A stretch of DNA of 64,000 nucleotides from Haliotis cracherodii (lineage: Eukaryota). Below the pieces are notes generated by a model. That model was not told the origin of the DNA and ran no database searches. It saw only the letters and a program-made list of their open reading frames with translations. Each line of letters begins with the position of its first letter. Position 1 is the stretch's first letter. The position numbers were made by a program, and so were the translations under genes. Shown in pieces: positions 5,339-29,002 of this stretch. The DNA lies in the NCBI RefSeq assembly GCF_022045235.1, contig NW_027266319.1:65596001-65660000 (forward strand), read 5' to 3'.

Positions 5339-6114
5339 ACAAAAATGAAAGTCCGACAACTGGTAGTCAAGATCACATACCTTGAGTGTCCCGGAAGGGA
5401 CTCAACCCCCCAAAAGGATGCAAATCTGTACTTTACTAAGAAAGTGTTATCCCAAATATAACATCTGTTACATTTGACCACTTTCTAAATGGCATTGTGT
5501 ATTCATAGCTCATGCCGTGCCATTTTACACTCAAAGTACGTGATCTAGACTTCTACTTTTTATGAAAGCCTCGATGGCCTTTTAGACTTGACTTTGTGTT
5601 GACCGATTTTCTCCGAATATCAACAAAACTATATCAATTTAATTACATATTCCGTTATTGGATAACACATCAAATCACGTGAGCCTTCGTTCCAGAGTGT
5701 GGAGGAATTAGGACGCCATGCGACTTTAGTTCGCGATCATCCAGCCTGTCTACAGAAGCAGGTTTGTCTGCTAATGAACAAATGAGGATGGATGAAGGAT
5801 GAGGATGAAATACTTCAACTGTTATAATATCAAAAATGTGTAGTCTTACCAGGACCTTCCCGTTCAATGTGTAATGATAATTACAGTGTTTATATGTGTT
5901 GATAAATGATGAAATGCCGCATCAAATAAATACGTTTAACTCAGGAGAGCGACGTGCGACTCAAGCGACACCTATCGGACAGCTGATGGCACGTGACATA
6001 ACGTGGACAATTCGGAATGGGGAGCTGCTGGTACTCAACTCACCAGGTGGCTGGAACCTGTCTATGCCGATGGTTTGTTTATTTTTCCATATTTCTGTAA
6101 ATAATATCTGAGGA

Positions 6115-6280
6115 GTGAGTGAGTGAGTATGGTTTTACGCCGCTTTTAGCAATATTCCAGCAATATCACGGCGGGGGACACCAGAAATGGGCTTCACACA
6201 TTGTGCCCATGTCGGGAATCGAACCCGGGTCTTCGGCGTGACGAGCGAACGCTTTAACCACTAGGCTACCCGACCGCCCC
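6115..6280 (-). mobile_element. Short tRNA-derived SINE, family C
   Basis: Head gtagcctagtggttaaagcg...gggttcgattccc, (actc)n tail, TSD taatatctgagga; absent from the paralogous introns. Confidence 0.9.
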
Positions 6281-6439
6281 TAATATCTGAGGAACGATAA
6301 TAACTGCTTAAAAGGAATTAAACGTCACAACAATATCTACGTAGCTAATGAAAACCGTTTTTCATTCAAAATAAAAATAATAAAAATATCGCTTGGTGAG
6401 AGGGTGAGTATAGTGTTACGACACATGACCAAGCATTAA

Positions 6440-6600
6440 CTTCTTTGAGAGGCATTTAGAAGATGGAATACTAAGTAAGGATACACATTTATGGATGACT
6501 AACTTCTTTATTACAATTAGGAGCGACGTTTCGGTGTAGGTTCTAACACCGTTATCAAGCAAGTCATTTACAGAGTGTGGCTGGCAAGTATATATACAAG
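6440..6600 (-). mobile_element. Penelope-like terminal repeat fragment with a hammerhead-like core (6521-6563)
   Basis: Minus strand reads TTGATAA-c-ggtgt/acacc-GAAACGTC; same family as 33901-34134. Confidence 0.55.
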
Positions 6601-6979
6601 TAGGAGGCAATGTAGGAGGCAATTTTTATACGGTAGAGTAGATTTTGTTATACTGGAGTAGAGAAGCCTGTTATGTACACACAAGGGTAGTGATGACAAT
6701 CATCGGTGAAGTCATTGACATAAACAAAGGATGAAGCCAGTAATTTAAACAACGGGATTATCGCTGATACGGTACATAACAATGCTAAATATACGAAGTG
6801 TACACTCCCCAGCTTTTACACTCTCCCTCCAACCCTCTCCATCATACACGGGGGAACCGTTTTCTAAATTTACATAAATGCAATACCTCGTATTTCCTTT
6901 AATAGCCACTGGAGTATCCAGGCGATATATTTGGTATGAAAATCGTCCAGCATCTTTTCTCAACGTGATAAAGTATATT

Positions 6980-8322
6980 CATCGCGTGACGTGTGGCCCT
7001 CTCCAATAATGCTTGTGTTCCTTTCCACCTCCATACAGACAGATGCTGTGCAGTGTCATATCGTGGGAACAAGAAAAGCAGATACTTTCATATATTGCGT
7101 TTTTTGTTCTGACATCAGCGAAGAGTTTGTGTCCATCGTAGAGCCTTGAACATCGTAACACCTTGAAATGATTTTGGAAAAAAATGGGATGGTTCATTAG
7201 AACTCCGGGAGAATGGAGACGGGTCTTTCTCAGGACACAGGAAACATGACATAATTTTGACGTTTTCCGCATCTGTCAAAATCCCTCTCGGCACAACGTT
7301 GTCAATGTAATAGTCCTTCTCCATACTGATGAAGGGAATCCCGTAGACTGTTTCGCCCAAGATCGATCTGAGGTTCTTGGGACTGTTCTCCCTTCCTTTT
7401 CGCCCACTTTCGGACTCTGCCCAAGCTGTGGCTGCTTTGAATGCGTTTTCAGGCTGGATAATGAGATCACCTGACTTCATTACGTTATCAAAGCAATCAT
7501 GTCTGAAACTGTCAGTCGCAAAACAAATATCTCCATGTTGAAGAACGATGTTGTAAGCTTTGTCACAGAGATCCTTTTCATCAAACCTGTGCGCATGCTC
7601 GAGGATGAGACAGGCATTTTCAGGTGACAGGCAATCCTCCGGGTAGGTGAGACACAGAGTCTCTAGACCCCCAATGGCGTACTTCTTGGCCAGGTACAGC
7701 AACCCAGTCACGTTCCCAGGTGTGACAGTCGCGTCATCTGTGTACAAGTACCTGTAGGAAACAAACTACATGTGTAGGCTACACTTATTTGTTAGATTTT
7801 AGTATAAACAGTGACATAAACATGTAAGTATTATGCTGTCACAATGCATTTCTTATGAATTTAAAAGTAACCTTGTTTTTCAATAAGAACCAACAATTCT
7901 CAATCATACTGCCATGTGATGATTGTGACCGACACAACATCCCATTTACGCTGTTCTGTAGTTTTGTAGACGGGCTCTGTGGCCGTGCGCATTATCATCC
8001 TGGAAAGTGTAATTTTCCCCGGGAAATGTGAGAATCGAAAAACATCATTATATGTTTGAACAAATGTTGTTTCGATCATCTACAGTCAATACAACAAGAA
8101 CTGGTCGGCTCGGAGTCAGAGTGTCTGAGTGGGGTATCCCTGTTAAACTGTGGTATGGTATCTAAGTGGGCTACCACTATACAACTGGTATAAATCACGC
8201 ACACGCATGTTGCATGTAGTACTCAAAGTTGTGTTCCGAGGTCAGCATGTGGCGGTTACACTCAACCACGGACCTCCGCTCTGCCAGTTCTTCACGGATC
8301 CAGATTCTGCTGCCACGTCTGT
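6980..8322 (-). pseudogene. Decayed BTB-BACK-(PHR) gene copy
   Basis: Exon 1 remnant ~8226-8318 has ATG>GTG and is cut by a SINE fragment; exon 2 from 7751 (YLYTDD...LLYLAKKY...BACK) has a 9-nt deletion relative to the 10951-12001 copy; PHR-like ESICFSCSHDMTLHSICLYGG lies in a shifted frame. Confidence 0.8.
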
Positions 8323-10842: not shown

Positions 10843-11390
10843 TTAGGGATTTAGTACGTTCTGATTATTAGGGAAAACATGCGGTACGATTTGGGGAATG
10901 GGTCGACCGGTCTGTTCGTTTTGACTAATAGGGAAGCCATGTGGGACGGTTTAGGGATTGGGTCGACCAGACTGTTCGTTTTGACGAATAGGGAAACCAT
11001 GCTGGACGGTTTGAAGTAAAGGACTCGGTACGAATATGGAAGGTCGTCGACCAGGCTGTACTTTTTCCTTTTTAACGGAACCAAGAAAATTGTCGGATTG
11101 GGGGATGGGTTGACGAGACTGTTCGTTTTGACGAATAGGGAAACCATGCTGGACGGTTTGAAGAAAAGGACTCGGTACGAATATGGAAGGTCGTCGACCA
11201 GGCTGTACTTTTTCATTTTTAACGGAACCAAGAAAATTGTCGGATTGGGGGATGGGTTGACGAGACTGTTCGTTTTGACGAATAGGGAAACCATGCGGGA
11301 CGGTTTGGGAAGTGATTTGACGAGACTGTTCGATTTGACGAATAGGGAAACCATGCGGGACGGTTTGGGGGGTGGGTTGACGAGACTGAG
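10843..11390 (-). repeat. Coding tandem repeat: 60-bp units plus a 147-bp higher-order duplication
   Basis: Unit QTVPHGFPIRQNEQSRQPIP; the block QSDNFLGSVKxEKVQPGRRPSIFVPSP occurs twice. Confidence 0.9.
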
Positions 11391-13193
11391 AGGGACACAA
11401 AAGGCTGTAACTAGGCTGTACAGGTTGATACATCGGTATTTTTCTTCCACCAATAGGAGACGGGTCCTTTTCAGGACACAGGAAACATGACATAATCTTC
11501 ACGTTTTCCGCATCTGTCAAAATCCCTCTCGGCACAACGTTTTTAACGTAATAGTCCTTCTCCATACTGATGAAGGGAATCCCGTAGACTGTTTCACCCA
11601 AGATCGATCTGAGGTTCTTGGGAGTGATCTCCCTTCCTTTTCGGCCACATTCGGCCTCAGCCCATACTGTGGCTGCTTTGAATGCGTTTTGGGGCTGGAC
11701 AGTGAGATCACCTGATTTCAGTACGTTATCAAAGCAATCATGACATAGATTTTTGAAACTTTCAGTTGCAAAACAAGTATCTCCATGTTGAAGAACAACT
11801 TTACAAGCCTTGTCGTAGAGATCCTCTTCATCAAACCTGTGCGCATGCTCGAGGATGAGACAGGCATTTTCAGGTGACAGACAGTTCTCTAGGTGGGTGA
11901 GGCACAGAGTCACAAGACCCCCAATGGCGTACTTCTTGGCCAGGTACAGCAACCCAGTCACGTTCCCAGGTGTGACAGTCGCGTCATCTGTGTACAAGTA
12001 CCTGTAGGAAACAAACAACACGTGTAGGTTATTCTTTTGACATTGATAGGACAAATGATGGAATTGCCAGAATATGTTGTTTGGAAAACATGTTACGTTT
12101 ATTCTAAATATAATATAATATACCATTGCTAAGGTGTTGCCAATATAATACACATTTGAGCAATTGCAGCCATCTAAATACTTTCCTAAACTTACATATG
12201 TTTTTGACGGCTGTCGCAGGTGTAAAAGTGTATCTTCAATATATGCAGCCTTGAAAGACAGGCTGTACGACAATCCCTCGCTTCAGTGGAAGAAACAATT
12301 GAAACAGAAGCCGGAAAATGTTGCATAGCCCATGAGAAAATCTGCATACAATCTCAGCCATCTCTAAGACATTCCAGATTTTTCTTCAGTTTTCGAAGTT
12401 TGTCAAAATAGTATCCTAAGCGAAGTCTGGAATGATAGTCGCCATTTTAAAACTTGTGCCGTAAGGCTTGAGAAAGCTACTTTCTGATTGGTTAACGCTA
12501 CCGTGACAGAACTCACAGACACGTATCCTGCCACGTGACCGTCACTATAAACGGCCTCGTTATCGATCGGTATCATATGAAGTATGCCTATTTTTATAAT
12601 ATTAACATTTCTTACCGATCTACAAATGAATATGGTAACCTGTTGTACCTGACACAAACATTTATATCCAACTTATGTTGTTGTTATTATCGACAAAATG
12701 GTTATTAACTTTTTAATTATGTAACTTATAAATTAGCCTTTAAGAAATTTACCCCCAACATCTAAAAACTAATCCTTAAAATTATTCATGCAGCAGAAAT
12801 AATCGCTAAAAGAATCTATTTGAAACATTTATCTCAAAACGCCTATTCAACAAATTCCGGTTCTGGTGTCAAGTAGCGGTAGTACCATGGATACTTAATA
12901 CGATATATTTAGGGTCCATATGGTAGTACTCACACCAACATATCCGAGAATATGTCTGCCTCGACGTCAGACATCTTGATGTCATCTTTCTCCGCCTGGG
13001 GGCCACACAGCATTGCATCAAAGACACAGCTTCGGCTTTTGAGCACATAGCGATGTGTCCGGATGGGCTTTTCACCTTTGCCAACCCGGAAGGTGACGTC
13101 AGAGTTGTGTTCTGAGGTCAGCATGTGGCGGTTACACTCAACCACGGACCTCCCGCTCTGCCAGTTATCCACGAATCCAGATCTTGCTGCCAT
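10951..13193 (-). CDS. BTB/POZ-BACK domain protein (BTBD3/6-like) with a repetitive Q/P/S/R-rich tail, ~436 aa, exons 13193-12934 and 12001-10951
   Basis: GT-AG intron joins in frame (DMLV|YLYTD); motifs SDVTFRVG, HRYVLKSRSCVFDAML, LYLAKKY, NACLILEHA, IPFISM. Confidence 0.85.
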
Positions 13194-13520
13194 GTCTGTC
13201 TGTCGGCTAAAATGAGAATAAAAGCCAATTTTAAGGAATTCTGCCTTCAAAAGTAAAGACACCACTGTTGATGTGAGTAAAGTTATCCAGAGAACTCTTT
13301 ATAAAAACATCGACATTACGTCTTCAATGGCTTACTACAGCCTGGCCATGCTTTTTAAAAAAAACCTTTTGATCAGCTTAGTTAAACTGGAATGGGTTAC
13401 TTATTAATTTTAAATTATTTCATAAATCCTGTAATAAGGTGTCATAATAATATAGTATTACTAAATTCTGTCTATGAGTTAGAACACGCAAACACATACT
13501 TCATTACTACCAAGTCTCGA

Positions 13521-13571
13521 ACTTGAAAAACCACCTTGACACTAACTTAGTGTCAAGGCGGTTTTTCAAGT
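13521..13571. repeat. Fold-back palindrome (25-bp arms, 1-nt loop, 1 mismatch) at the left junction of the large transposon
   Basis: acttgaaaaaccaccttgacactaa-c-ttagtgtcaaggcggtttttcaagt; only one arm at the empty site (~463-483). Confidence 0.95.
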
Positions 13572-15802
13572 CCGCACTCAGCAACCACCACTGATTTTTT
13601 GTTTGTATATTTACTTTTTTCTAACATTTTTTATATCATCTTTGATATGTCCTGAATGAATAACCACAATTGTTTTATGTGTATTTTGAGTTTGAATGCA
13701 TTTGGCCATGTTGTAAGATGAGATCTCAGAAGACCAAAAACGGACCCAATTTTCGATGTTGAACAAAAAGTATCCCAATGACACATGAAATATATTTTAC
13801 ACACAAGACACAAAATCCGTATATAATATTAATCCTTAGGCATTTATTTACAACATACAATGACAAAAATTGAGATGAGAAGAAAATTCAGTCTCAAGAC
13901 AGCTCTCAACAGGGGTACCCACAGCCGTTTGAAGGAAAGACAAGCCTGAAAGAGAGCAAAATGTAGAAATAAGAATTATTTTGAAATATTTTAGTATAAT
14001 ATTTCATAAATATCTCGAAATTCATATCCTAAAGCTATTATCATTTTTTAACATCAATGTATTTTAAGAAATAATAAATATAATAATATACTTACAACTG
14101 CGTCTTACCAAATGAAGCACTACTGGGTTGGACTGATCTGGGGAATATCCTCATATGCAAGAAAACTGAAAACAATACAAATAAACCTCAAATAAGCATT
14201 TGTAAATAGTTTAAAAAATACATAATACATATCATGATGATACATATTACTGCATCAAAATTGTTTTTAAAATAATGCTTTAGAATAATATTCATTGTGG
14301 CTTGAGGAAATTCATATGGTGCCCCTATTATTTATTAAACTGAAATAATTTGAAGAAACAAATAAACATAATACTTACATTAGTTACAAACACATCTGAC
14401 CACATAATGCACTACTCTCATGGACGTGTATGGGGGAGTATCCTCAGTCACACAAAAAGGGTCAAGTGTAACTGAAAACAATACAAATAAACAAACATTT
14501 TAATATGTAACCAAAATTAATTATATTTTTTACTAGGATGCATCAGAAATCTTAAATTGATACTTCAACAACATAACAAAGTTTTAACCTGCATTATTCA
14601 AACTTGAGAAATCTTTTGTCATTAGGAAGTTTCATACATATTTATCATCAGTTAATGCAACAAATATTCAGACCTACCAAAAACATTTTGGTGTGTTCAA
14701 TTATTATATATTATTCATGCTGTATATAACAAACAAAATCTTAGTCAATGTTAGTAGATTACATGCAAACTTATTAGTAAACAAACAATGTGAACAAATA
14801 TTTCTAAAAAGTTATTTTCATTAAATAAGAAATAAAATCAAACTTGTAAATTCAACACAAACTGATCAACAAATGAAAATAATACTGAATTCAAACATAA
14901 CAGGTTTGTAAATGAACTAAAATCTAACCAACAAATCAATTTCAACTGTATATAGGCAACTTAAATTACCTCTACCGCAACTATAGCAGCTGGAAACAAA
15001 AACTAAGTATCTAATGCCAGCTGTTCGACTCCCTTATTGTCCACTGTCCACACTTTGACTATGAGGTTTAACAACGATTTTCAAATCCCCCTTCTCAAAG
15101 TCCTCACACAGGTTGTAGGCATGTACTGCTTCATCATTTTCATACTGTACATTGAACCACTTGGGAAATCCAGGAACTACAGAAATCACAAATCCTTTGT
15201 AGACTCCATCATCAAATTTGTGTTCCACATGTTTTCCAACGAAGAGAGGAATTCCTTCCTGATGCTGCCCTGTTGTCACCATGGCCATGGTTTCTCTGAT
15301 CAAAGTCATCAGTTCTGTCTCAAATCCAGAATGGAATGTTTGACATACATTCCAGCTTGATTCTTTTTGGAAAAGGAGAACACCTTGGGGTCCTTGTATT
15401 TTTGTTTGAGGACTGTTTTTCGGAATTTCAGCTGGGATTCTATGGCTTTTCTCTGATCAATTGCCGAAAGTCTTGTCAAACCTTCATTAACTTGCTCCTC
15501 ACTCTGCCATAAACCATAATAGCAGACATCATTTGTCAAGTTTTCTGCGGCTTTCAAACGCTTCTTCTCCTTTTCTTCAAGATCCTTCTGTCTTTTCGTC
15601 TGCTGTGCAAGACGTCTCTCTTCAATTTCATCCAGACGGGTCTTGAAAGTTTTCCATATTTTAGCCCCACCCTTTCTGGAGTTCATGAGAAGCTTGTTTC
15701 GGGCACTGTCTTCAAGATTGTCAAGCCATTCACAAGTTATGTTGTGTGAATACATGAGAAAAGCTTCATTTGTAAGAAGCGAAGAATTTGGCCTGTATCT
15801 TA

Positions 15803-18800
15803 TAGTCTAGTAGCTAAAAGCAATTTTCAATGCTAACCTTGCATTTGAGGTCCCACAGTGTTTTATTGCTGATTTTATAAGCTAAAGATATGTAGATCAA
15901 GAAACAACTGGATGCCAACTTGGCACCCTTGAGGATTTTAATTAAAATGTGTTTTAAAATATACCCTTGGAATCTCAAGCGCCAGCAGAGGACCGTATGG
16001 AGGCAAAATAAGTTGTTCGGTAAGTAGCACAAAATGGAGTACTTCCTGTACAGACTGTTTACATTAGTTACTCATTTTCTACCTCATTTTCACAAATAAT
16101 ATGGCACAATGGTAAGTTATTTTTGTTGTCCAACTGATTTATGACATAGACATTGCAATTATGCAGAGTAAATGAATGAGAGATAAGTGGGAAAAATAAT
16201 TCAGATCAAAATGCAAACTAGTGAAGTGTCGTCTGCTAGGCTATGCATACCAATGCTATCAAAAGCTGCATTAAACTTTATTTGTTGTTGAAATATATAA
16301 CAACTATTTATATATGCATCAATATATTCATGTTTGCAAACTGTATGCACAATATCTCATGGAAATAATGTCTCCATTCACTTGAATTGATAGTTTGATG
16401 AAAACTGTATATACTACTTTCCAAACCACTTATCATACTGCCATAGGGTCTCTATTGACTATGCAAGTAAGGAAGAGATTTTATTTTATATTTGTCTCTA
16501 AAATGATTACTAAAATAAATTGAAAGGGTTTGATTTGTAGATACTATTTTCCTGAGAACTATTATGTTTGATATCAACCTACAAAGGAAAAAAAAAGACG
16601 TATTTGGCAATATAAGCCCTAAATGATTCAAATGAAATGTTACATAATTTTCATCAAATGCAATATTGATTATTGGTACAGGTACACTGGAAATATGTTA
16701 AATAATTGATGTATGTCTGTCAGTGGCTACAATTTCATAAATCAATTTCATATTTATTTGAATTTTAAACTTTTTGAAACATTATTGTTAATATTTTGCT
16801 ATTCAACTACCTTTCAATATATCATTAATATTTTTTTATATTTTAAGAGAAATAATGAATCCTTTCTTTCTTCAATTTCAGTCGGGGGTTGAATGTTTAT
16901 TCCAGCTGATTGGCTGTTGTAATAACCCAAATCAGAAGCTGACAGCTAATTCAACTAGTCAACGTATCATATCTATCATTGATGCTAGCAAGACCAGACA
17001 GGATGGCCTACATTTACTAATTGAAAAAAATAAATCTTCTTCTGATGTTAATGAATTATTTTACCACAAAAACTGTGTTTCTACTTACACATCAAAGACC
17101 CACCTTAAAAGACTTTCAAAATCTTGTTCAGATAAATGCCTGCCAGAACCATCCAAAAAGAGAAGGCGTCGTTCAGTTTCAAGCACTGACTTTAACTTTC
17201 TAAAACATTGCTTATTCTGTGGGAACCCATGTGAAATTGAAAAAGACTCTAGAAATCCTGGACGATGGAAGAGATCTCTTCTTTGCAGAACTGCAGATGA
17301 TGGCCAAAGATCATTCAAGAATATAATGACGGTGAGATCAAAAACAACATCAGTTTACACGCCTTTGATAGACATGAAACCGGCTGACCCTGACACCATT
17401 TTAACTGCTCTGAAGGAAGCTGACAGATTAACTAAACAAGTTGGACAAGATATTGTTGTTTTCACATGTGACCAACAACTGTACAGGGTGGCAGTTCACA
17501 TTTCATGGGCATACCCAGAAAGATTTCACAATTTCTTTCTGCGTCTTGGAGGAATGCATTTCCTTATGAACTTTATTGGATGTGTTGGCACACTGATGGC
17601 TGGAAGTAGATTGTCAGACATTCTTGAGAGCTCTTTCGGAAGTGTAGCAAACATGATGTCAGGAAAAAGATACCTTCAAAACTTACGAGCGTTAAGAATT
17701 CTTGTTGAAGAGCTGTTAAGGAATGTGATAACAGAAGTATCCAAGACAGAAGACTTATTGAACATCTTGGAAGGCAGAGCAAGACATGCCAGAACAACGC
17801 GACTGTGGTTGGATATGCTAATCAAACCAGTTTTGCTGATGCTACAGTTTGTCCGAGCTGAAAAAGAGGCTGATTGGCCACTCCATTTGCTTGCAGTGAA
17901 ACTGATGATGCCATATTTCTTTGCTGTTGGACATCAGAACTATGCTCGTTATGGCCTCTATTATCTTAGAACAGCAGAAGATCTAAATCCAGGACTACTT
18001 GAGAAGTTTCTCAAAGGGGAACACGTCACATGTCATACACCTGGTACTTGGAATGGAATATGGACAGACATGATGATTGAAACTACTTTCATGAAATATG
18101 GAAAGGTCCAGATGGCATCATTGGCATCACCTTAAAGCCAAACACTCTGAAGATATGGGCCTTGAGTCTTCATATTTGCAGTGTTTTGTCAAATGATGTC
18201 TATGACATGACAAACCAGGACAAATCAACAAATCAAGTTCATAAAGAAGAAATGAAAGGCCGAATTGCAGCAGATGCAAAAGATCGGGAAAACATTCGAC
18301 AGAAGCTGCAAGAGTCAAGTGATCCACTAGACGTGTCGCAACTCCTTACTGATAAACTTTGGCAGGTTGTGAGTGGCAGATTTGCAGACAGTACTGTGAA
18401 TGTTCATAAGGCATTGGCAGGGGTCAGAAAGAAATGGAGAAATTTGAAAGGTCATGGCCAGATGGATTTCATAGGCCCTTGTCAAAGAAGATAAAGACTA
18501 TGGCTGTCTTGAAGAATCAATGTTCAGATTGGATCTGCCACGTTATATGACACAAATCTGATCTACTCCAGAATCATTGGACTTCAGGCCTCAGGAAGAG
18601 TCATAAACATTTCTGAGGTCTTAAAGTTTGAGTTGGCACCAGTGCCTACTTCTATGTTTACAGATGCAGGTGTCATGAGAACAGCCACAAACAAAGCTAC
18701 TTTGAGGAATCAATTGCAGGTTGAATTGTCAGAAAGCCTCCCAAAAAGCGGACCAAAAAAGCATTATCATTGATGGTTCTGCAATGCTATGGGTGGTTCA

Positions 18801-20866
18801 CTGGCCGAAAGATGGAAAAGTAAAAGATTTCATTGACAATGTTGCTTCATATGTAATGAGGAAACTGAAAGACGCTGATGTGTACCTTGTATTTGACAGG
18901 TACTTTGGATACAGCATCAAAGGTGTCACAAGATCATCACGGGACAAAGAAGCCAACCGACAACACAAGATTTCTCTGTCCATGCCCCTCCCACCACAGA
19001 AGATTCTACTCACAGTTACTTCAAACAAAGTTCAACTGATAGATCTAGTAGTAGATTATCTGCAAGAGATGAGAGAATCGTTGAAAGTCTGCTCACACAA
19101 GCTAGTATTAACTGGAAGTTCCTCGGTACCTGTGGAGGTCAACAATGGTTTACTGATTCATCGACAAGATCTCAAGACAACCCATGAAGAGGCTGATGTT
19201 ATTATCATTCAGCAGGTGATATCTGTTGCAGAGTCAGTTGCTAATGCATCTATCACAGTGGTGTGTGACAACACTGATGTGTTTGTGCTGCTACTGCATT
19301 TCTACCTATACCAACAATTAACGTGTCAGCTATGCATGGAGTCAACATCATCTGTCAACAAGAAGTGCATTGACATCAAAGCCACAGTTGAGAAACACTC
19401 TGCTATTGTTCCCAAAATTCTTGCAGCTCATGCTCTCACAGGCTGTGACACAGTGGCTCAGTGCTGGGGTGTTGGAAAATCTACTGCTGTCAAATTGTTG
19501 AAAGGTAATTGTAATCTTCATCATGTTGGGGACCTGTCTGCGTCCTCTAAAGAAATAACAGAAGAATCCATGTTATTTCTGTCATCATGTTATGGTCACA
19601 CTGCATCTACAATGCATGAGGTACGTTTCAAAGTATGGAAATCAAAAGTTGGAAGAAGAAATGATCTCTCATCTATGAAGATCATGTCATTGCCACCTAC
19701 TCAGGAGGCATGTGAACAGAATGCATTGAGGGCTGATATGCAAACCTGCATCTGGAAACATGCTTTAGATAAAGACCCTCCGACTCTAGATCCTCTCAAG
19801 CATGGCTGGATGAAAGACACCCTCAACCAGATTTTGCTTCCAGTGCTGCTGCCACCAGGAACGCCATCAGCTCCTGACTACATTCTCAAACTGTTGAAAT
19901 GTAGCTGTGAAAACTGCGCCTCTGCAAAGTGTTGATGTGCTGTTGCTCGACTTCCATGTGCAATATTCTGTGAATGTGAAGGATGTGATGATTGTTATAA
20001 CCAGCACACCAGAACTACACAGTGTGTGTTAGATGAAAGTGACTGATGTGACTGATCTGATGTGTCAATAGACTCAAACAGACTTTGGCTATGACTCTCT
20101 CATGAATATTGTGACTTAAATTGATTCAAGAATGGGACCTGACTGATTATCCTTGATAAGGATTTGTATGATGCATGTTCTTCATCTGATAGTATTGTAA
20201 GTAACATACAATCAATAAATCAAACAATTCAGTCATGGGTTTATGTTATTTCCAACTCATGCATATAGTTATATATTCATTGAAACAATGAGTTAAAATA
20301 CTTTTATGGATATTGTCAAAGCACTCTTTTATCCATACTATTTATTAGTAAACATCTGAAAGGTCTCTAAAAAAGGTTTACTTATCCTATTTTCAAGATA
20401 TAAATCAAAGTAATTATAACTTAATTCATATTAGAAATTTCAAAATCAAATAATTTTTTTTAATCTACTGTAATACATTGATATTTCACAATTCATCAGT
20501 AACATGGTATGGATTACATTTCGTCTGGATAAAAGAGGTTTAGAAAATCATAAATCCCTATGTTTTAATACTTAAAAGAACTTCTACCACATGTCTGACC
20601 AAAACTTTTAACATATATGTTGTATATCAAGTGTATTTAACATCTATATACTCTGAAAAGTTCATTATGTGTTTCTTTCTGACTACAAAAATGATGCCGA
20701 ATATGAAAATTGGGCCAATTTTTTTAAATCTTTTTTTTCAAAACCCTCAAGGGTGCCAAAGTGGCATCCATTAGTTTATTCATATGTAGTGTCTGAACAA
20801 ATGAAATCATGCAAAAACAACTGTGGGACCTAAATTGCAAGGTCATGTCAACATTCTGCCGGACTA
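15803..20866 (+). mobile_element. Academ (AcademX-type) DNA transposon nested in the outer transposase
   Basis: TAGTC...GACTA termini with ~140-bp imperfect TIRs; 3-bp TSD TTA (15800-15802, 20867-20869); removing it restores the host frame DQLL-RYRPNSS. Confidence 0.85.
16882..20046 (+). pseudogene. Academ transposase + XPG/FEN1-like nuclease + Cys-rich zinc finger (disrupted)
   Basis: VFTCDQQLY, RLGGMH, YFFAVGHQNYARYG, WTDMMIE; nuclease motifs IIDG, LVFDRY, HEEAD, DNTDV, LTGCDT, GVGK; C-terminal CSC..C...C*C....PC..FCEC; frameshifts in ~18100-18750 and TGA at 19933. Confidence 0.8.
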
Positions 20867-21672
20867 TTAGAAGTTGGTCCAACTGACCAAATACAAACTC
20901 TGGCAGTTTGTTATGTTTCATGGCTGACTTTGTTTCCTCCACTACTTAAGCTGCAGGATTCCAGAATTTTCCTCCAGGCAGGTGATCTGTGACCATTCTA
21001 GAGATCAGTTGGTGGATCGTCTTGAACTGTGCCTGCAACACTGGGCATAGGATTGGGTCCACAGATGGGGATACCGTTGTGAGAAGGGGTAAAACCTTGT
21101 CATCCTCATCTAGTGGCGTGTCAAATGGTGTAGTTTTACCTCTCATGAACTCGGTCATGACTTCCACTTCAAGGAAACCTTTGTCCAAAAACTTCACAAG
21201 CGTTTCAAAATGCTTGTTCATCTCTAGGATGTGGCCTTTCATTTCCAGCAATTTCCACAAAGGACCGGAGACAAATTTGGAAATCAAACTAAGCGCTCTT
21301 GCTCCTGCAAGGTACAGCTTTTCTTTGATGTCATGTGAGACTGCTTTCAGTAGGCTGTTTGCTGTTAGGTGAACGGTGTCAAGAAATGTTGAAATGTCTT
21401 CATGATGGATATAGACTGCATGACCCAAGGAGAACACAAGGTTGAAGCGATTGTGCTAAAAGCGAACAAAACGATTGCGTTCCCCTGATTCACTCTTCAA
21501 GTATGTCTTCCATGCCATGCTGACACCATTTTTTTCATCTTCACCCACTGCAACGGCCTTGCAACAAGTTCTGATTACACGTAGTGTGCCACTCTCACTC
21601 TTATGGAATAACTTTAGTTCAGGAAACTTTGCAGATCCAATAGTCTTTCCTTGAAGGAATGAATGTTCAAAA

Positions 21673-22452
21673 GTCTTGAGCAAGTAACTGAACTATGCAA
21701 ACTGAAAGAAGAAGAGAAAGATCAACAGATCACAATTGATTATTTGCGATCCTTACTAGATGACAGCAGAGAGCTTGAACTATTTGACAAAGATTTCCGT
21801 TCTTACACACCGGTAACTGTACAGTGTGTGACAAACTTGACTAATTTGAAAGTGGCCACATAAAAGGTAGGCAGTGTTATTAGAGAGGTTGCATCTCTTT
21901 GTGGGAAGACAACAAATGCTTTACCTTCTGCCTCAACAGTCAACAGTATTGTCCATGCAAAATGTGCAGTTGCACAAAAATGCAGTTACACGATGTCCTG
22001 AAGATTAAGAAGGATACAACTCTGTACACAGATGAGACCAGAAAATATGGAAAGACAGTGGAGACATATGTTGTCACTGATGAATCCCAGACATCATATA
22101 TTTTGGGTCTCCGAGAAATGGCCAACAAAAGTAGTCAGACTACAATTGACACCTTTAGGAAGATTCTTGAAGACATCAACGGCCACTGCCATAACGAGGA
22201 GAAGGAAGGAGAAATGCATGAATATCGAATTCTAGCAAATATTCGAGACACAATGTCCGATAGAGCCTCAGCAGAGAAGACATTCAACAGGCTTCTAGAA
22301 CAATTCAGAGCAACTATTTTGCCGCAAGTTGTTGATGGGTGGGCAGACATGGATGAGAAAGAGAAGTCCATGTGTACAAAAATGAACACCTTTTTTTGTG
22401 GACTCCACCTACTTTGTGGAATGGCTGATTCTTGTGAACAAACTTTGAAGAC
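21673..22452 (+). other. Internal inversion within the outer transposase
   Basis: This segment codes on + while its flanks code on -; the + segment ends CEQTLKT and the minus strand resumes KTFEHS in frame; AAGAC/GTCTT inverted microhomology. Confidence 0.85.
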
Positions 22453-25400
22453 ATCAAAGAAAAGCTGTACCTTGTCTGCTGCTTGCTTGTTTGCATTAGA
22501 AGCAATTTTCTGACGAAGACCTTTCACAGCTCTGTTGCTTTCAAAATACATCTTCATATACTTGTCTCCTTTTCTCTTGAAATGGGATGCTCTCTTTTCA
22601 AGTTGTTGTAGCTTCTTCTGTTTTGCTTTAGTATCTTTTTGTAAGCCAACAGATTCCTTTTCAATTTTCAGTCTCTTCTCCTTAGTCGATGCTTCCTTTT
22701 CAACTAATCTTTCATATTTTCTTTTTATCTGTTTCCTTTCATCTTGCAATTTCTGCGTTCTTTAAGCTGTTGCTTGGTCTTGTCCAATTCTGTTGCATGT
22801 GTCTTCTGTTCAGGTTGCTTAGGCAAGATGAAAGTTGATGAAACAGATGTACTTGTAGACTGTGGAATGACAAATTGCTTTTGAAGAATGTCCAACTTAC
22901 TTTGACCCCTCTTATTCTTCAGTGATGTCAGTACCCTGTGAATCTTAGCTATGACAGCTGGTGCATTTATGCATTCAACATCTAATCCACAAATCCTTGA
23001 AATCCAATTTTGCAGAGAATGTCCAACTTCAAGACCTAATGTCCTTGACAAAGTATACAAATCAAATAGTACTCCATGTGTCACTTGTCTGTCCGTAATT
23101 TGGGGAAAGTTCAGAGGTATTATCTATCAATTTACTTTGGGAAATTCCAAGTTGATCCAAATACGTCATGGCTGAATAATTAATTAACAAACAAATGGTT
23201 GCTGAAAGTCAAGATGGTTCTGCTTGAAATTGTCTCGGTTGACTTGTCGTTTTGAAAGACTTCCACCAAGTCACCTGCTAAAAGTCCTGTTGAATTTGTG
23301 TAACAGTCCCCACTACAGACTGTCTGAGACTCAACTGATTGCTTTCTTTCAATCGACTTACTTGTACGTCTCTTCTTCAGAATGATTGACTGGGATTCCT
23401 CGTCCGAACTAGAGATGTATTGTACAGAAGCCTCATAACTAGTGCTTTGTTTTGGTGAGGGTCCTACATCACTGGTGACCGCCTGCGAGGTTGGGATAGT
23501 TGCATCACTGTCTACAGCCTGTCAGAGAATAAAATAATATGTAAAAGTTGCAAAGTGTTATTAAATAAATGACATAGAAACTATTATTTATTGTTATTCA
23601 TACTCACAAAGAATAGTTTTATTACTCCCCGACAGAGTTAAGACGGATATAGTATGCCAAATATGATCCAACGCTTTGCTGCAGTAAAATGTCCTGTGCT
23701 TTTAGCATGATGCAGGTGGTGTTGATTTTAGCACTATAGAAGTTGACTATTATTATTTACTAATAATATATAAAATTATTTAGGAGTAGTATGAATTTAT
23801 AGTTATACAATCTTATCACCTGAGTATCTGTGAAAGTTAGACTCCCATATCTGTACTGGGAATATTCATCCGAACTCGGCAATGGCTGGCTATCAAATGT
23901 GAGGCTGTTGTCAGGCTCATTCATGGTAACTGAAACATACATACAAAGTGATCATGTGAAATTAACAAAGTCTTTGCCTTAGTACTAAAGGGGCCAAAAA
24001 CCTATTTCCAAAGCATATACAATTTGCATTGCAAAAAGGAGTACTTAAAAAATACAAAAAATTCTGTTTGATGCTTTTATATACAAGAATGTGGGGATGT
24101 TTTGCACAGATTATAAATAGAATACACTTGCTTAAACAGTACATACTCAATAACACAGGTAATAATTACTGTGTTATGCAAAGGTGTGTATAAAATAGAT
24201 GTAAAAGCACGATGAATGCTGTAAGTACAAATATTCACCCTAGCCATTTTCAATTTAACTTAAGTGTTTTATTAGCAACAGTGAATATGGCATGCAATAA
24301 TTAACAATCTGACTCACCAACCAATCACAAAACTAAAGTATGAATCTTGCAAAAGTATGTCTTCCAGTCCCCCCTTGAAAACGAAAAGTTTAAATTATGT
24401 CATGTAATTGAAGAGATAAATCACATTACAACAGATTACAACAATTTGAATATCTAATATTTTGTATTTCTTATTATATCATTTGATAATTAATCAAGTT
24501 ACCCCAATCTGCTTTTAAATTGCTTACATATAATTTCTCATATTCTCAGGTAAAAAATAGAAATGTAATCCAATAAAAACGTGGTGTGCTTATGTTAGAC
24601 GTATTTTTATTGATAATGTTATTACTTTTGATTAATAACTACAGTGTATGCTTTACTTCATTTAATAATGTAACAGTTTTCCAGTTGGAAAAGTAATCAA
24701 ATTAAATGAAATCTTACTTAATCGAACACGTTTAGGCTAGAGTCACTTTGTTCTTGAAAATATTTTAAAATAAATCCAACTAGATATGAATATATTAATA
24801 GTCATGATCTGAATAGTAATTATTAATATATAGATCAGGACTTTATTAATTTATTTATTTAATAGTCTTATTAATAGTAATAATACTCTTAATATATCTT
24901 AGTTTCAAGGAAATCCCCGAACTAAAAATAGAAATGTAACATCTATCGCGCGATTGTACCAGCGCGATTGTCTCCCGAGTTACCTCCCTTTGGAAAATTG
25001 AGTCCCATCGCTTGAAGACAATTTAAGCTATATCTACGCTAAAATACTAATGGAATCACGATGGAAGTTATTTCTATGAAGTCTAGAAGTCAAGAAACAA
25101 CCGTTACCTATTGCGTATATGGATGTCAAGGGTCCATTCATGTCCAAATTTCCGTTTCCAGCGCTGACAAATCTTCGCTTGACCTCACTTGAAAAAACAA
25201 TGGCGATTTACGGTTAATTTATTCATGTAAGCTTTGATATATCACCTTTGCCAAGGTCGAGGTCGTAGGAATTTTCCACAGCAGAGCGTATGAAATTGCT
25301 TGGTCTGCCAGGTCAGCTTGAACCCGGAGGCAAGAGATAGGTTACGCGCGCCCCCTAGCAGCGGTGGTGGTTGCCGGGCAGAAATTTCTTATTTAATTTA

Positions 25401-25513
25401 ATATAATTTAATGACAGTTTAAGAAACGCTACACTATCAAAGAGTTGCTTCCGCTTAACTATTGCACCTTTCTTTTCAAACCGAAACTATCGTCCATAGA
25501 ACGAACGAATTAA

Positions 25514-26392
25514 GGATTTGAGAAAACACGCTCACGAGGTTTTGGTAGACAGAGCATGCCCTGGGGAGAGGGAAAAACCAGGGGGGCGAAGCCCCCGCGG
25601 TTTTTCCCGACCCCCAGGGCATGCTCTGTCTACTAAAACCGAGGGAGAGTGTTTTTCCATACTTTTAAACCGTCTAAATTGATTAAATGTTATAACGAGC
25701 ATCTATAAATGAGGCGCTTCATTATAGCGCTTCCTTGAAGACATGATATCATAACTTGCACGTGAAATTCGCTGACTTGCCAGACGGTCAAGAGCACTTG
25801 GATGTGTCAACAACAAAACACAACTAAAATACTTACTTTTAAATGAAAGTGAAATCTTCGGTCTCTAAATGTTTGTGTTGCAATATTCCACTTCTTTTAA
25901 ACTTTTCAAAACGAAAATTTCGCAAATTTAAAAGGTGTCTTTTGCTTTACAAGATTTACGACTTTAAACAATCCAACTGTTACGTAGAGGTAGTTGTGAC
26001 CTAACGGCTAGCAGTTACTTCCCGTGCTTATTGTGCAGCATTGAGAAGCACTTGTTTAAAAGCACGTGTTGTGAAACCTTGCTGTCCTTTCACCAGAGAC
26101 TCTGAAGTGGAAAGATGAGCGACGAAGACTTTCATTTTGTTACCCAGTCTTCATTCACTGTACACATGCCATTCAATTTTAATTGAATTAAAATTTTGAA
26201 TTGCTACTTGTAGTCATTTTTTCAGTTACTTGGTTAAATCTGGGATTTTAGGTTTTACATTCAAAGTAAAACTTCCAGAACGAAAATATAACCTCATAAT
26301 AGGTTTTACTTTGAAAGTAAAACCTCACAATAGGTTTTAATGCCTATAGAAAGAACTCTCTTACTTAATAGAGATCCCAATTAATAGGTTTA
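25514..26392. mobile_element. Non-autonomous insertion with a long subterminal hairpin (~25537-25643) centred on GCGAAGC
   Basis: Absent from the paralog (gaattaatgaatg at ~588-600); flanked by TAA/TAA; no TIRs seen. Superfamily uncertain (Crypton-like is a guess). Confidence 0.7.
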
Positions 26393-29002
26393 TAATGAAT
26401 GTACATGAACACCCTGAATGCTTTATACATAGTTACTCCTTATAGACATCACACAACATTGATTTAGACTGAAATATTGCTAATAGTTCACTAAAACGAA
26501 AGTGAAAGTAGATGCAAACATATGACATAAACGTTTAACGTCTTGTCATTGTTTGGTTAATATGGTATAGGATTATCACATGTACAATATCCACAAATAT
26601 AATTTAATTCCGTTATTTTCTGATAAAAACAATTCTGACTCACATGACAACGTAATGCACCGCCTTACAGTCCGTGTTCTTCCCTCACTGGTGAAAGCGC
26701 GCAATACCTCAGTCACGTGACTATCTCGACCGTACATTGACGCTAATCAATAACATCCGATATTCACAAACAGTGTTTTGTATTGTTGCTATGGAGAGTT
26801 GCAGTAGCCAACACATATCTCCAAACATATACCCAGCATGGCTATGTAAATAAGAAAGTGTCGGTGGTATATATTCAATAAAGCCACATAACATATTTAT
26901 TTCACTGGAGTGAGTAAATCATGCGGAGAGCCGAAGTCAACAATATTGAAACTGTATCGCGATGACCAGTAAAGTTGTATAATCGAGTATTGGACAGAGA
27001 AACCATTGACAGAATGCATGAAGAACGATCCACACCGTCGGGGCACGATGACACGTCACGCCCCAAAGCCTCCGATGCCCTTACGGCTATTATGACAGGC
27101 TGGGAGGTATTCTTCCTGCAGGGTAGTTCCTGTAAGTGAAGTCTAGCGTTGTGCTGAAGCCGTGAACAACTAGATGTATACAGTAGAATCTCGTCAACTC
27201 GAACTTCATTATCTCGACACATATCTTAAGACGATGTCATTTTATTATTCCTTGCAGAAAATGTAGTATAACCAAGACACTTCGCTTCACTGGAAGGACA
27301 TATGTTTCACTGTTCTTACTATTTCACGTTGACGATATGTTTGTGTAATTATGTTTAAAATGATGCAGTTTTCATGCATGTTGTTTTCATCTATAAATTG
27401 TAACATTTTGATATTATCTCTGTCTTATTCTCGCATCGCCGAAATACATGAAACCCAGTTATCTTGTTAAAATGGAGAATCAGTTAAATTAGAGAACCAT
27501 CCATGTTTTCTTTCATCAATTTAATGGCATCACAAACTCAATAGAAGAATTTTCAGATTTTATCAGTTAGTTTGGTGTAAATTGGTGAAAAACTTGTTGT
27601 TTGAAATCGTATCTTGCCGGAAAATGATGTTACTGAATTCAAAGTGAAGTGACAATATATTCTCATTTACTTAATACACCGGTGAATAAATGGTTTTATT
27701 ATGATTGATTAAAAATAATTTTCATTTTAATATGTTATAGAAAATGTACTTTAATACATTACAAATGATGGTTATAAAACAATTAATTATATTGAAGACT
27801 AATCTGAAATTAACGTTAACAGAGAAAATGACATCAGAAAATATAACCGATTTACAAAAGACATCCTAAATTGCATTGAATAATATCCCAACAGGTATTA
27901 GAAATATATATTTCTGCATGAGAATAATAAACCAGAGAACCATACGATTTTAATCCAGTTCAAACAAAATTATTAGTACTTCGAGTTTGTATCATGTAAC
28001 TTCCTGTTTCCAAAACACTTCTACTGCATTTGACTCAAAGGATCTAACAAAATCATGTGGTCAGGCTCGTTGTGTCGGTAAATACATATCATCGTATCCC
28101 AATTGCGCAGATTTATGCTCATGGTGTCAATAACTGCATTTCTGGTCCAGACTCGGCTTTTTACAGGCCGCCGTCAGAAAGATGGAATAGTGTGTGCCCT
28201 GAATCAACCTTCAACACCAAAATCAAAGAGCACAAATCTGCAACCGTTAAATCATAAAATAAATCCGCCATCTCGGCCAATATCAGCATCTGCCCCAATG
28301 AAAACACCAATTGGGGCAATATCTACATCCACTAGGGGCAACCGCCCTTGACGTTACTACAAAAAGGTTTGTCGAAGCAATCCAGATTAGTCGCCACAAG
28401 CCAGTATCTATTTTGATCAGGTCACACTTGGATGAGCACAATAGTTCAGTAGGTAGTTTATGTGGATGAATGACTCTCTGGCTTACTATTCCTCAGGGTA
28501 CACACTGGTCCCCCTGTGCCAGCGTTTAGCCACATATGTATCGTCAACTTCTTCGACGGTGCAGACACACATACAGGCGACCACATGTAATCAGGAGGTC
28601 AGACTCAGTTACTTGGTTGACTGTACGTCACTCTGTCGTGAGATGCTGCTCACATCCACTGATGGAGTTTTCAGAAGAGATTATGAAAAGTGAGTAACAG
28701 AACTGACATCTGTTTTATGTATTCATCTTTATGTGTCCCAAGGCCAGCAACATTAGCATTCGTTAAAATCAACTATCTAAAATGACACGCATCCAGAGTG
28801 ATGGATGTTTGTTTATTTGTTTGTTTGTTTGTCGTTTAACGCCACACTCGGAAATATTCCAGCTTTATGACTGCGGTACACAAACTGCTAAGGATATTGG
28901 AAGATCCGTGTAGAGACATATGACTAAGACATAGTGATCAAGTTGATGTCTTTATTAACAGTACTGATACAACGTGGTAAGGGAAAGGCCACATGTTGGG
29001 GG

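Follow-up and report, generated by a model that had tools for sequence, protein, structure and literature searches.

The locus described here raises the question of whether a DNA transposon can carry, fused to its own transposase, a chromatin-reading module of the spindlin type, and what such a module would do for the element. It lies in a stretch of 64,000 nt from Haliotis cracherodii (RefSeq assembly GCF_022045235.1, contig NW_027266319.1, positions 65,596,001 to 65,660,000 of the forward strand), hereafter the window, in which the interval from about 14138 to at least 23123, read on the minus strand, holds the decayed remains of a cut-and-paste DNA transposon; the element belongs to a hAT-like lineage outside Pfam coverage. 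The identity of the family, its domain structure and the fusion of its transposase to a Spin/Ssty domain can be stated with high confidence. The whole of the reading that we favour, namely a hAT-like transposase tethered by a spindlin-type methyl-histone reader, is probable though by no means assured, and its mechanistic part, histone reading and targeting, which we derive from sequence and models, has in our judgement somewhat less than an even chance of being right.

We have established that the Spin/Ssty identity of the window domain is real and far beyond chance. A first-pass annotation, made from the letters alone, had proposed that the transposase ends in a spindlin-type domain after a frameshift at about 15309, and the peptide it quoted is found exactly in a minus-strand open reading frame (ORF) of 91 residues (15034..15309). 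Within this ORF, Pfam Spin-Ssty (PF02513) matches residues 24–67 (E 1.9e-8, 34.4 bits against a curated cut-off of 25), and the sole further Pfam match is a weak one of Tudor type. AlphaFold2, given 75 residues from the window itself and an alignment of family members, produced a model with a mean predicted local distance difference test score (pLDDT) of 86.2; when this model was searched with Foldseek against the PDB, all 44 matches at E ≤ 0.001 were spindlins (TMq 0.68–0.76, 33–37% identity), with a root-mean-square deviation (rmsd) of 1.1–2.3 Å for most, and the first non-spindlin fold, the PHF1 Tudor domain, came at E 0.02. With the Pfam score above its cut-off and spindlins at the top of the structural search, the proposed C terminus is borne out, as is the frameshift: the upstream frame 15806–15312 ends in a TGA (15309–15311) that overlaps the start codon (ATG) of the Spin ORF, no stop interrupts the Spin frame as far back as 15456, and comparison with family members places the shift within about 15 nt of 15312 (near 15312–15325).

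The fusion, moreover, is real and occurs in several animal phyla. An in-frame C-terminal Spin repeat is present elsewhere in this genome, in a 540-aa ORF on C3 (locus L014) and in a frame of 1,071 aa on C67 (locus L013) that one TAG interrupts. A database search with the C-terminal half of L013 returned 49 proteins, mostly of 900–990 aa and none functionally named, with relatives in Haliotis, Ruditapes, Mercenaria, Patella, Argopecten, Mytilus and Saccostrea as well as in amphioxus and a sturgeon; the Spin-bearing family proteins of molluscs and other animals measure about 950–1,080 aa. Pfam Spin-Ssty matches the C terminus in frame in P0006 (E 2.6e-12), P0010 (1.5e-8) and P0003 (1.1e-7), so that in-frame fusion in other copies, which the annotation had left to be checked, is found in these three proteins as in L013 and L014. 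A Spin-only profile built from seven copies of this genome and run against 1.84 billion cluster representatives matched 448 clusters at E ≤ 0.001, of which 149 reached E ≤ 1e-10. Of the 148 top matches that were new, all 18 representatives of at least 380 aa are homologous to the same transposase (BLASTP against P0006 down to E 0), and nearly all of these carry the repeat at the C terminus; of the 148, 79 extend into the transposase region, 56 are short domain-only fragments and about 13–15 are multi-repeat spindlins. A homology search restricted to the Spin region of P0006 returned two proteins only, a figure that reflects the word index and not rarity.

As to the enzyme, the family protein of about 1,000 aa consists, in order, of an N-terminal helical domain, a long coiled coil, a DDE core with an insertion domain, a second long helix, a linker and one Spin repeat. 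P0006 (979 aa), modelled with AlphaFold2 from an alignment of 41 sequences, gives a mean pLDDT of 85.8, and the linker before the Spin domain is predicted to be disordered (pLDDT < 50 at 907–915). Residues 330–476 of this model adopt the order beta1-beta2-beta3-alpha-beta4-alpha-beta5, which is RNase H-like, and are followed by an all-helical region. The top ten Foldseek matches in the PDB are all Hermes chains (E 2.5e-7 to 1.4e-5); VIA-align superposes model residues 293–761 on Hermes 135–609 with Z 18.3 and an rmsd of 3.5 Å over 341 residues, the next matches being ISCth4 (Z 11) and retroviral integrase cores (Z about 10). Among named structural neighbours in the ESM Atlas, hAT families come nearest (Dimer_Tnp_hAT, DUF659 and DUF4371; TM 0.65–0.70 over about 400 residues); ahead of these stand three unnamed clusters of ~970–1,000 aa, which are mostly labelled Porifera, Mollusca and Basidiomycota. 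D335, D408, C453, H456 and E723 are invariant in the 33–39 family sequences that cover them, and in the model the first Asp lies on beta-1, the second follows beta-4 and the Glu is in a helix past the insertion domain. From these positions, which fit the usual D, D, CxxH, E layout, we suggest that D335, D408 and E723, together with the CxxH motif, are candidate catalytic residues. The sequences in the PDB that a profile search matched were spindlins and coiled coils, with no transposase among them; it is the structure that ties the family to hAT. The designation as a transposase stands, given the Hermes-like fold, the invariant candidate D/D/E and CxxH residues, and the terminal inverted repeats (TIRs) and target-site duplications (TSDs) of a sister subfamily.

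That sister subfamily, the younger L013 type, is represented by copies on C67 (two), C6 and C7 that are 89–99% identical, have unrelated flanks and share sharp boundaries (L013:1635 and 7703), which define a unit of 6,069 bp. Each of these four full copies has a perfect 11-bp TIR, TAGGGATTCCG, at each end, and two of them, those on C6 and C7, are flanked by 7-bp TSDs (ATATTAT and CTAAAGA). With such hallmarks the family is, or was, mobile; it occupies ~15–20 loci in the 1.18-Gb genome, mostly decayed. The two C67 copies (G000:C67; L013 and L051) lie 21 kb apart and are 99% identical, full-length and bounded by perfect TIRs, with no matching TSD and no common flanks. For L014 a 12-nt inverted pair was considered as a terminus and discarded, having no TSD and lying within chance expectation.

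Contigs of two runs from a related species that are probably RNA match the L013 element at 95–99% identity and span its ORF, the Spin part (2519–2745) included; the RNA label is an automatic guess for which splice-like junctions argue. One contig in each run has four junctions, at which L013 positions 5861–6121, 6202–6368, 6449–6621 and 6686–7456 are skipped, and the skipped parts end CT..AC on the plus strand, that is GT..AG on the coding strand. This indicates, as far as the sequences go, a spliced 5' leader of the element, the ORF itself being intronless in this genome. The element was not found in RNA runs of the source organism, which is no evidence of silence. Several of the database relatives stop right after ...KVISQV, inside the Spin repeat; that they break off there suggests an intron at this point in other species.

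A profile of the whole family finds SPIN1, SPIN3 and SPIN4 in the PDB at E 7e-23 to 1e-20 and scores best on SPIN1 repeat 2 (48 bits, versus 20 and 13 on repeats 1 and 3), and residues 914–979 of the P0006 model superpose on SPIN1 128–194 with Z 12.1 and an rmsd of 1.6 Å over 66 residues. We take F141, W151, Y170 and Y177, the four aromatic positions, together with D184 to make up the H3K4me3 cage of SPIN1, in line with PDB titles. Mapped through the HMMER alignment to SPIN1 repeat 2, these positions read as follows:

F141-equivalent: F in 19, W in 2 and Y in 1 of 30 family members; F in the window copy
W151-equivalent: Y in 19 and F in 11 of 30 members; Y in the window copy
Y170-equivalent: Y in 21 of 23 members; Y in the window copy
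Y177-equivalent: Y in 12, W in 4 and F in 2 of 24 members; H in the window copy
D184-equivalent: D in 21 and E in 1 of 22 members; D in the window copy

A GDL motif is likewise conserved in the family. The mapping agrees with the manual assignment of F, Y, Y, H plus D in the first-pass annotation; its description of the cage as largely retained holds across the family and less so for the window copy, which has His at a position that is aromatic in 18 of 24 members.

How, then, might such a protein work? We suggest that the spindlin-type repeat may bind a methylated histone tail through its conserved aromatic cage and acidic residues. The best guess for the mark would be H3K4me3, for the sole reason that the transposon repeat is closest to SPIN1 repeat 2; PDB titles indicate H3K9me3, H4K20me3 and methyl-arginine as further marks that spindlin repeats recognise. 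Such binding would act as a tether between the transposase, or the transpososome, and marked chromatin and so could bias where the element lands, in analogy to the chromodomains of chromovirus integrases. Several points weigh against this reading. On the side of the enzyme, no Pfam hAT-related match (E ≤ 1 or ≤ 0.01) was found in the window pieces, in L013 and L014 or in full-length relatives, the TSD is 7 bp and not the usual 8 bp of hAT elements, and two of the four full L013-type copies, both on C67, lack a matching TSD. On the side of the reader, besides the window's histidine in place of Y177, the F141-equivalent is non-aromatic (C, I, Q or A) in 8 of 30 members, so that some may not bind methyl-lysine, and the E142-equivalent is not conserved. 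The low copy number, with few loci datable, leaves too few insertions for site statistics. Furthermore, Hermes reportedly prefers nucleosome-free DNA without any reader domain, and a reader is therefore not needed for insertion beside promoters.

Some of these same features would be expected if the spindlin-type repeat were a protein–protein or nucleic-acid module that reads no histone mark and leaves the choice of target untouched; its role might be to bring in a host factor whose motif is methylated or aromatic-binding, or to assist transpososome assembly. There is a single repeat here and not three as in spindlins, the F141- and E142-equivalents vary as described, and SPIN1 repeats do bind non-histone partners, PDB titles naming complexes with SPINDOC and HBx. 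We nevertheless regard this explanation as unlikely, if the most serious of the alternatives, considering that D184/GDL and all but one of the four cage positions are strongly conserved in a family whose members are otherwise only ~24–40% identical, as expected of a cage in use, and that among solved structures the nearest relative is repeat 2, which binds methyl-lysine. A counter-silencing role, in which the protein hinders host repression of the element by occupying a histone mark, be it at the element's own locus or at another, has nothing direct in its favour, and the evidence on domain and cage is consistent with it too; it appears quite improbable, given that the domain is covalently joined to a catalytic transposase by a flexible linker, the usual layout of a tether, and that no separate reader-only ORF or isoform was seen among the sequences. 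It could also be argued that we are dealing with a host gene family, a domesticated transposase plus reader of which the window copy is a pseudogene, since copy number here is low, RefSeq gene models exist in several molluscs, and the sturgeon and Mytilus members with two Tudor-like repeats could be domesticated. Near-identical 6.07-kb units with perfect TIRs and TSDs on different chromosomes, the many decayed copies, the invariance of the candidate catalytic residues and a patchy taxonomic spread over many clusters speak so strongly the other way that we give this possibility hardly any weight. A hAT-like transposase tethered by its spindlin-type repeat continues to be the reading that we favour.

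The relation of the transposon-borne domain to the spindlins themselves was approached with a quick maximum-likelihood tree of 35 transposon-borne and 35 spindlin repeats (71 columns; support by the Shimodaira–Hasegawa-like approximate likelihood ratio test, SH-aLRT, only). A single branch (SH-aLRT 96) separates all transposon-borne domains from all spindlin repeats; each spindlin repeat class likewise lies on one side of its own branch, and the transposon domains are not nested in repeat 2. Because the tree is unrooted, it does not give the direction of transfer between transposon and spindlin. A Pfam scan of this genome found Spin/Ssty above threshold only in transposon copies and brought up no host spindlin, though one split into exons could escape such a scan. 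The single branch, the fact that the nearest Spin-like clusters are mostly transposon-borne and the restriction of this genome's matches to transposons would fit a common origin in which spindlins arose by domestication and triplication of a transposon C-terminal reader, with no capture of a host repeat by the transposon, an origin that we mention as improbable.

Turning to the window copy itself, its parts and those of the insertion that splits it are the following:

15037..15309, minus strand: C-terminal transposase piece with a single Spin/Ssty Tudor-like repeat (stop codon 15034–15036; Pfam match at about 15109–15240)
15312..15802, minus strand: helical or coiled-coil region preceding the Spin domain, with LWQS..V and LKFRK.VL motifs, in another frame than the Spin piece
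14138..15036, minus strand: 3' untranslated or terminal part of the outer element, ending where homology to the C7 copy of the window's own subfamily (L003) stops
15803..20866, plus strand: nested, unrelated TIR transposon of 5,064 bp, splitting the outer ORF just past the candidate catalytic-E motif
20867..21692, minus strand: all-alpha insertion domain and helix with the candidate catalytic Glu (LPEFVFGQLD), with two in-frame stops
21899..22513, plus strand: RNase H-like core segment (LYTDET..., TMSDRA..., FFCGLHLL), inverted relative to the rest of the element
22515..23123, minus strand: N-terminal helical domain and start of the long coiled coil (pieces 23123–22728 and 22761–22138), corresponding to the same parts of the P0006 model

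The region 15312..15802 has a tblastn-type match to residues 298–449 of the L013 protein and is also present in the family alignment, and 20867..21692, which the stop-to-stop map divides into pieces 21692–21459, 21455–20949 and 20945 onwards, matches L013 residues 59–299, interrupted by one TAG and one TAA. No Pfam transposase match was obtained in any upstream coding piece of the window copy. At the other end, window 14152–15566 is 81% identical by blastn to the C7 copy (L003), the sole independent copy from the window's subfamily, the local alignment beginning near 14138. The termini of the window's own element were not recovered: a search of the window for the L013-type TIR gave 4 matches against 8.4 expected, and neither blast for an inverted partner of the left end nor a repeat search produced a convincing TIR there. 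For the 5' boundary of the outer element, window 22500–25500 matches only a paralogue.

This paralogue (L015) lies 39–44 kb upstream on the same chromosome, and window 12650–15802 is collinear with it at 97.3% identity and window 20867–24286 at 99.6%; the similarity runs on at 90–96% into a neighbouring gene that encodes BTB and BACK domains and has its ATG at 13193. It follows that one duplication copied the transposon remnant along with the BTB gene. This segmental duplication (window 12650–24286 and beyond against G000:C56:65569434-65578215) takes in the 5' part of the BTB/BACK gene with the transposon remnant and reaches at least window 26500, with 99% identity. The core segment is inverted in both C56 copies, that is in the window and its paralogue, an inversion that the C7 copy lacks. 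A perfect 25-nt inverted repeat (21308–21332/22450–22474) lies at the edge of this segment; since the same peptide, DIKEKLYL, is encoded there on both strands, the rearrangement was an inverted duplication and not a plain inversion. With its frameshift, two in-frame stops, inverted core and nested 5-kb transposon, the window copy is long dead, a fossil without present function that says little about targeting.

The same applies to the position beside the BTB gene. The first-pass annotation had put the element ~380 bp from the BTB ATG and had seen in this a promoter-proximal site that fits H3K4me3 targeting. The distance has to be corrected: homology to the C7 copy ends at about 14138–14152, roughly 0.95 kb upstream of the ATG, and the stop codon of the Spin ORF lies 1.84 kb upstream of it. 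The earlier figure may have arisen because a palindrome at 13518–13574 (28-nt arms, 93% complementary, 1-nt loop; ~330–380 bp upstream of the ATG) was taken as the end of the element. The remnant is indeed upstream of the BTB gene; as an argument from promoter proximity, however, this is weak, for it is a single site some 0.95 kb away in a long-dead copy, and because it was copied along with the BTB gene by the segmental duplication the position counts as one event at most. In its C-terminal coding region (window 10851–11500) the BTB/BACK gene contains tandem peptide repeats with units like ...QNEQSRQPIPQSDNFLGSVK....

The nested element at 15803–20866 has the TSD TTA, termini TAGTC...GACTA and imperfect subterminal inverted repeats of ~150 bp. 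Junctions and the empty site were compared, and its 5,064 bp are not present in the paralogue or in the C7 copy; it was therefore inserted after the local segmental duplication. Of its two plus-strand ORFs, that at 16855–18135 (426 aa) has a weak DUF6589 match, below the cut-off (E 3.6e-5), and that at 18721–19935 (404 aa) has no Pfam match. At window 25510–26396 there is, in addition, a high-copy repeat of ~890 bp with internal inverted ends of ~140 bp, of which at least 40 copies, 83–95% identical, are spread over many chromosomes; it resembles a non-autonomous DNA element.

Finally, considering how this family compares with known systems, it is like the hAT elements (Hermes, Ac, hobo) in having an RNase H-like DDE core split by an all-alpha insertion domain, for which they are the best PDB structural match, in its CxxH motif past the second Asp, and in short TIRs that start with TAGGG, fitting YARNG; such TIRs are shown for the L013 subfamily and were not found for the window's own. 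The Glu stands in an S/PE..F motif that resembles the C-terminal ER.F of hAT transposases, and the first seven bases of the TIR equal TAGGGAT, which we take to be the Ac terminus. The family departs from hAT elements in having no Pfam hAT, DUF659 or DUF4371 match and no BED finger among its sequences, in a TSD of 7 bp in two clear cases as against 8, and in a coiled coil of ~150 residues near the N terminus, a second long helix near the C terminus and a terminal Spin/Ssty domain. With repeat 2 of the spindlin family (SPIN1–4, Ssty) it shares the Pfam family, 32–37% identity, an rmsd of 1.1–1.6 Å in the best superpositions and, in most transposon members, the cage positions and D184/GDL; unlike the spindlins, which have three tandem repeats in ~230–340 aa, the transposon protein has one repeat (two in a few members), attached to a transposase of ~1,000 aa. 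The 7-bp TSD also brought to mind the Dada superfamily, which occurs in molluscs and fish, makes 6–7-bp TSDs and has a DDE core distantly like those of hAT, P, MuDR and Kolobok elements (PMC3706591). Dada elements have DxxH, no TIRs, N- and C-terminal zinc fingers and insert into snRNA and tRNA genes (PMC3706591). The present family shares none of these features, and the assignment is ruled out by the invariant CxxH, the perfect TIRs and the mutually unrelated flanks.

Integration guided by chromatin marks has its clearest natural examples in transposable elements that bring a chromatin reader of their own, and so far these have mostly been either retroelement integrases that bear a chromodomain or fusions to PHD and Chromo. 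Chromodomains of the MAGGY type are reported to target H3K9me chromatin (as cited in 10.1101/2021.11.30.470311). The survey of chromatin-domain/transposon fusions by Grau-Bove et al. lists mainly Chromo and PHD, including a hAT with Chromo in a sponge, and names Spin/Ssty or spindlin nowhere in its text (10.1101/2021.11.30.470311); the present fusion is invisible to a survey of domain co-occurrence because the transposase core has no Pfam domain. Our full-text literature searches joining spindlin or Spin-Ssty to transposase or DNA transposon likewise returned nothing relevant, and a spindlin-type reader on an uncatalogued hAT-like lineage appears to be undescribed. Here it is a whole cut-and-paste transposase lineage, present in several animal phyla, that carries a spindlin-type domain closest to the H3K4me3-binding repeat; the finding bears on the origin of the spindlin fold, and if H3K4me3 or another methyl mark were bound, the family would supply a DNA transposase that a histone mark guides to active promoters, a case of interest for the study of transposon targeting. 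As a mobile-element enzyme joined to a small putative methyl-lysine reader, the family belongs to a known kind, together with the chromodomains of chromovirus integrases, the hAT elements with Chromo and the transposable elements with PHD, from all of which it is set apart by a reader of the Spin/Ssty type.

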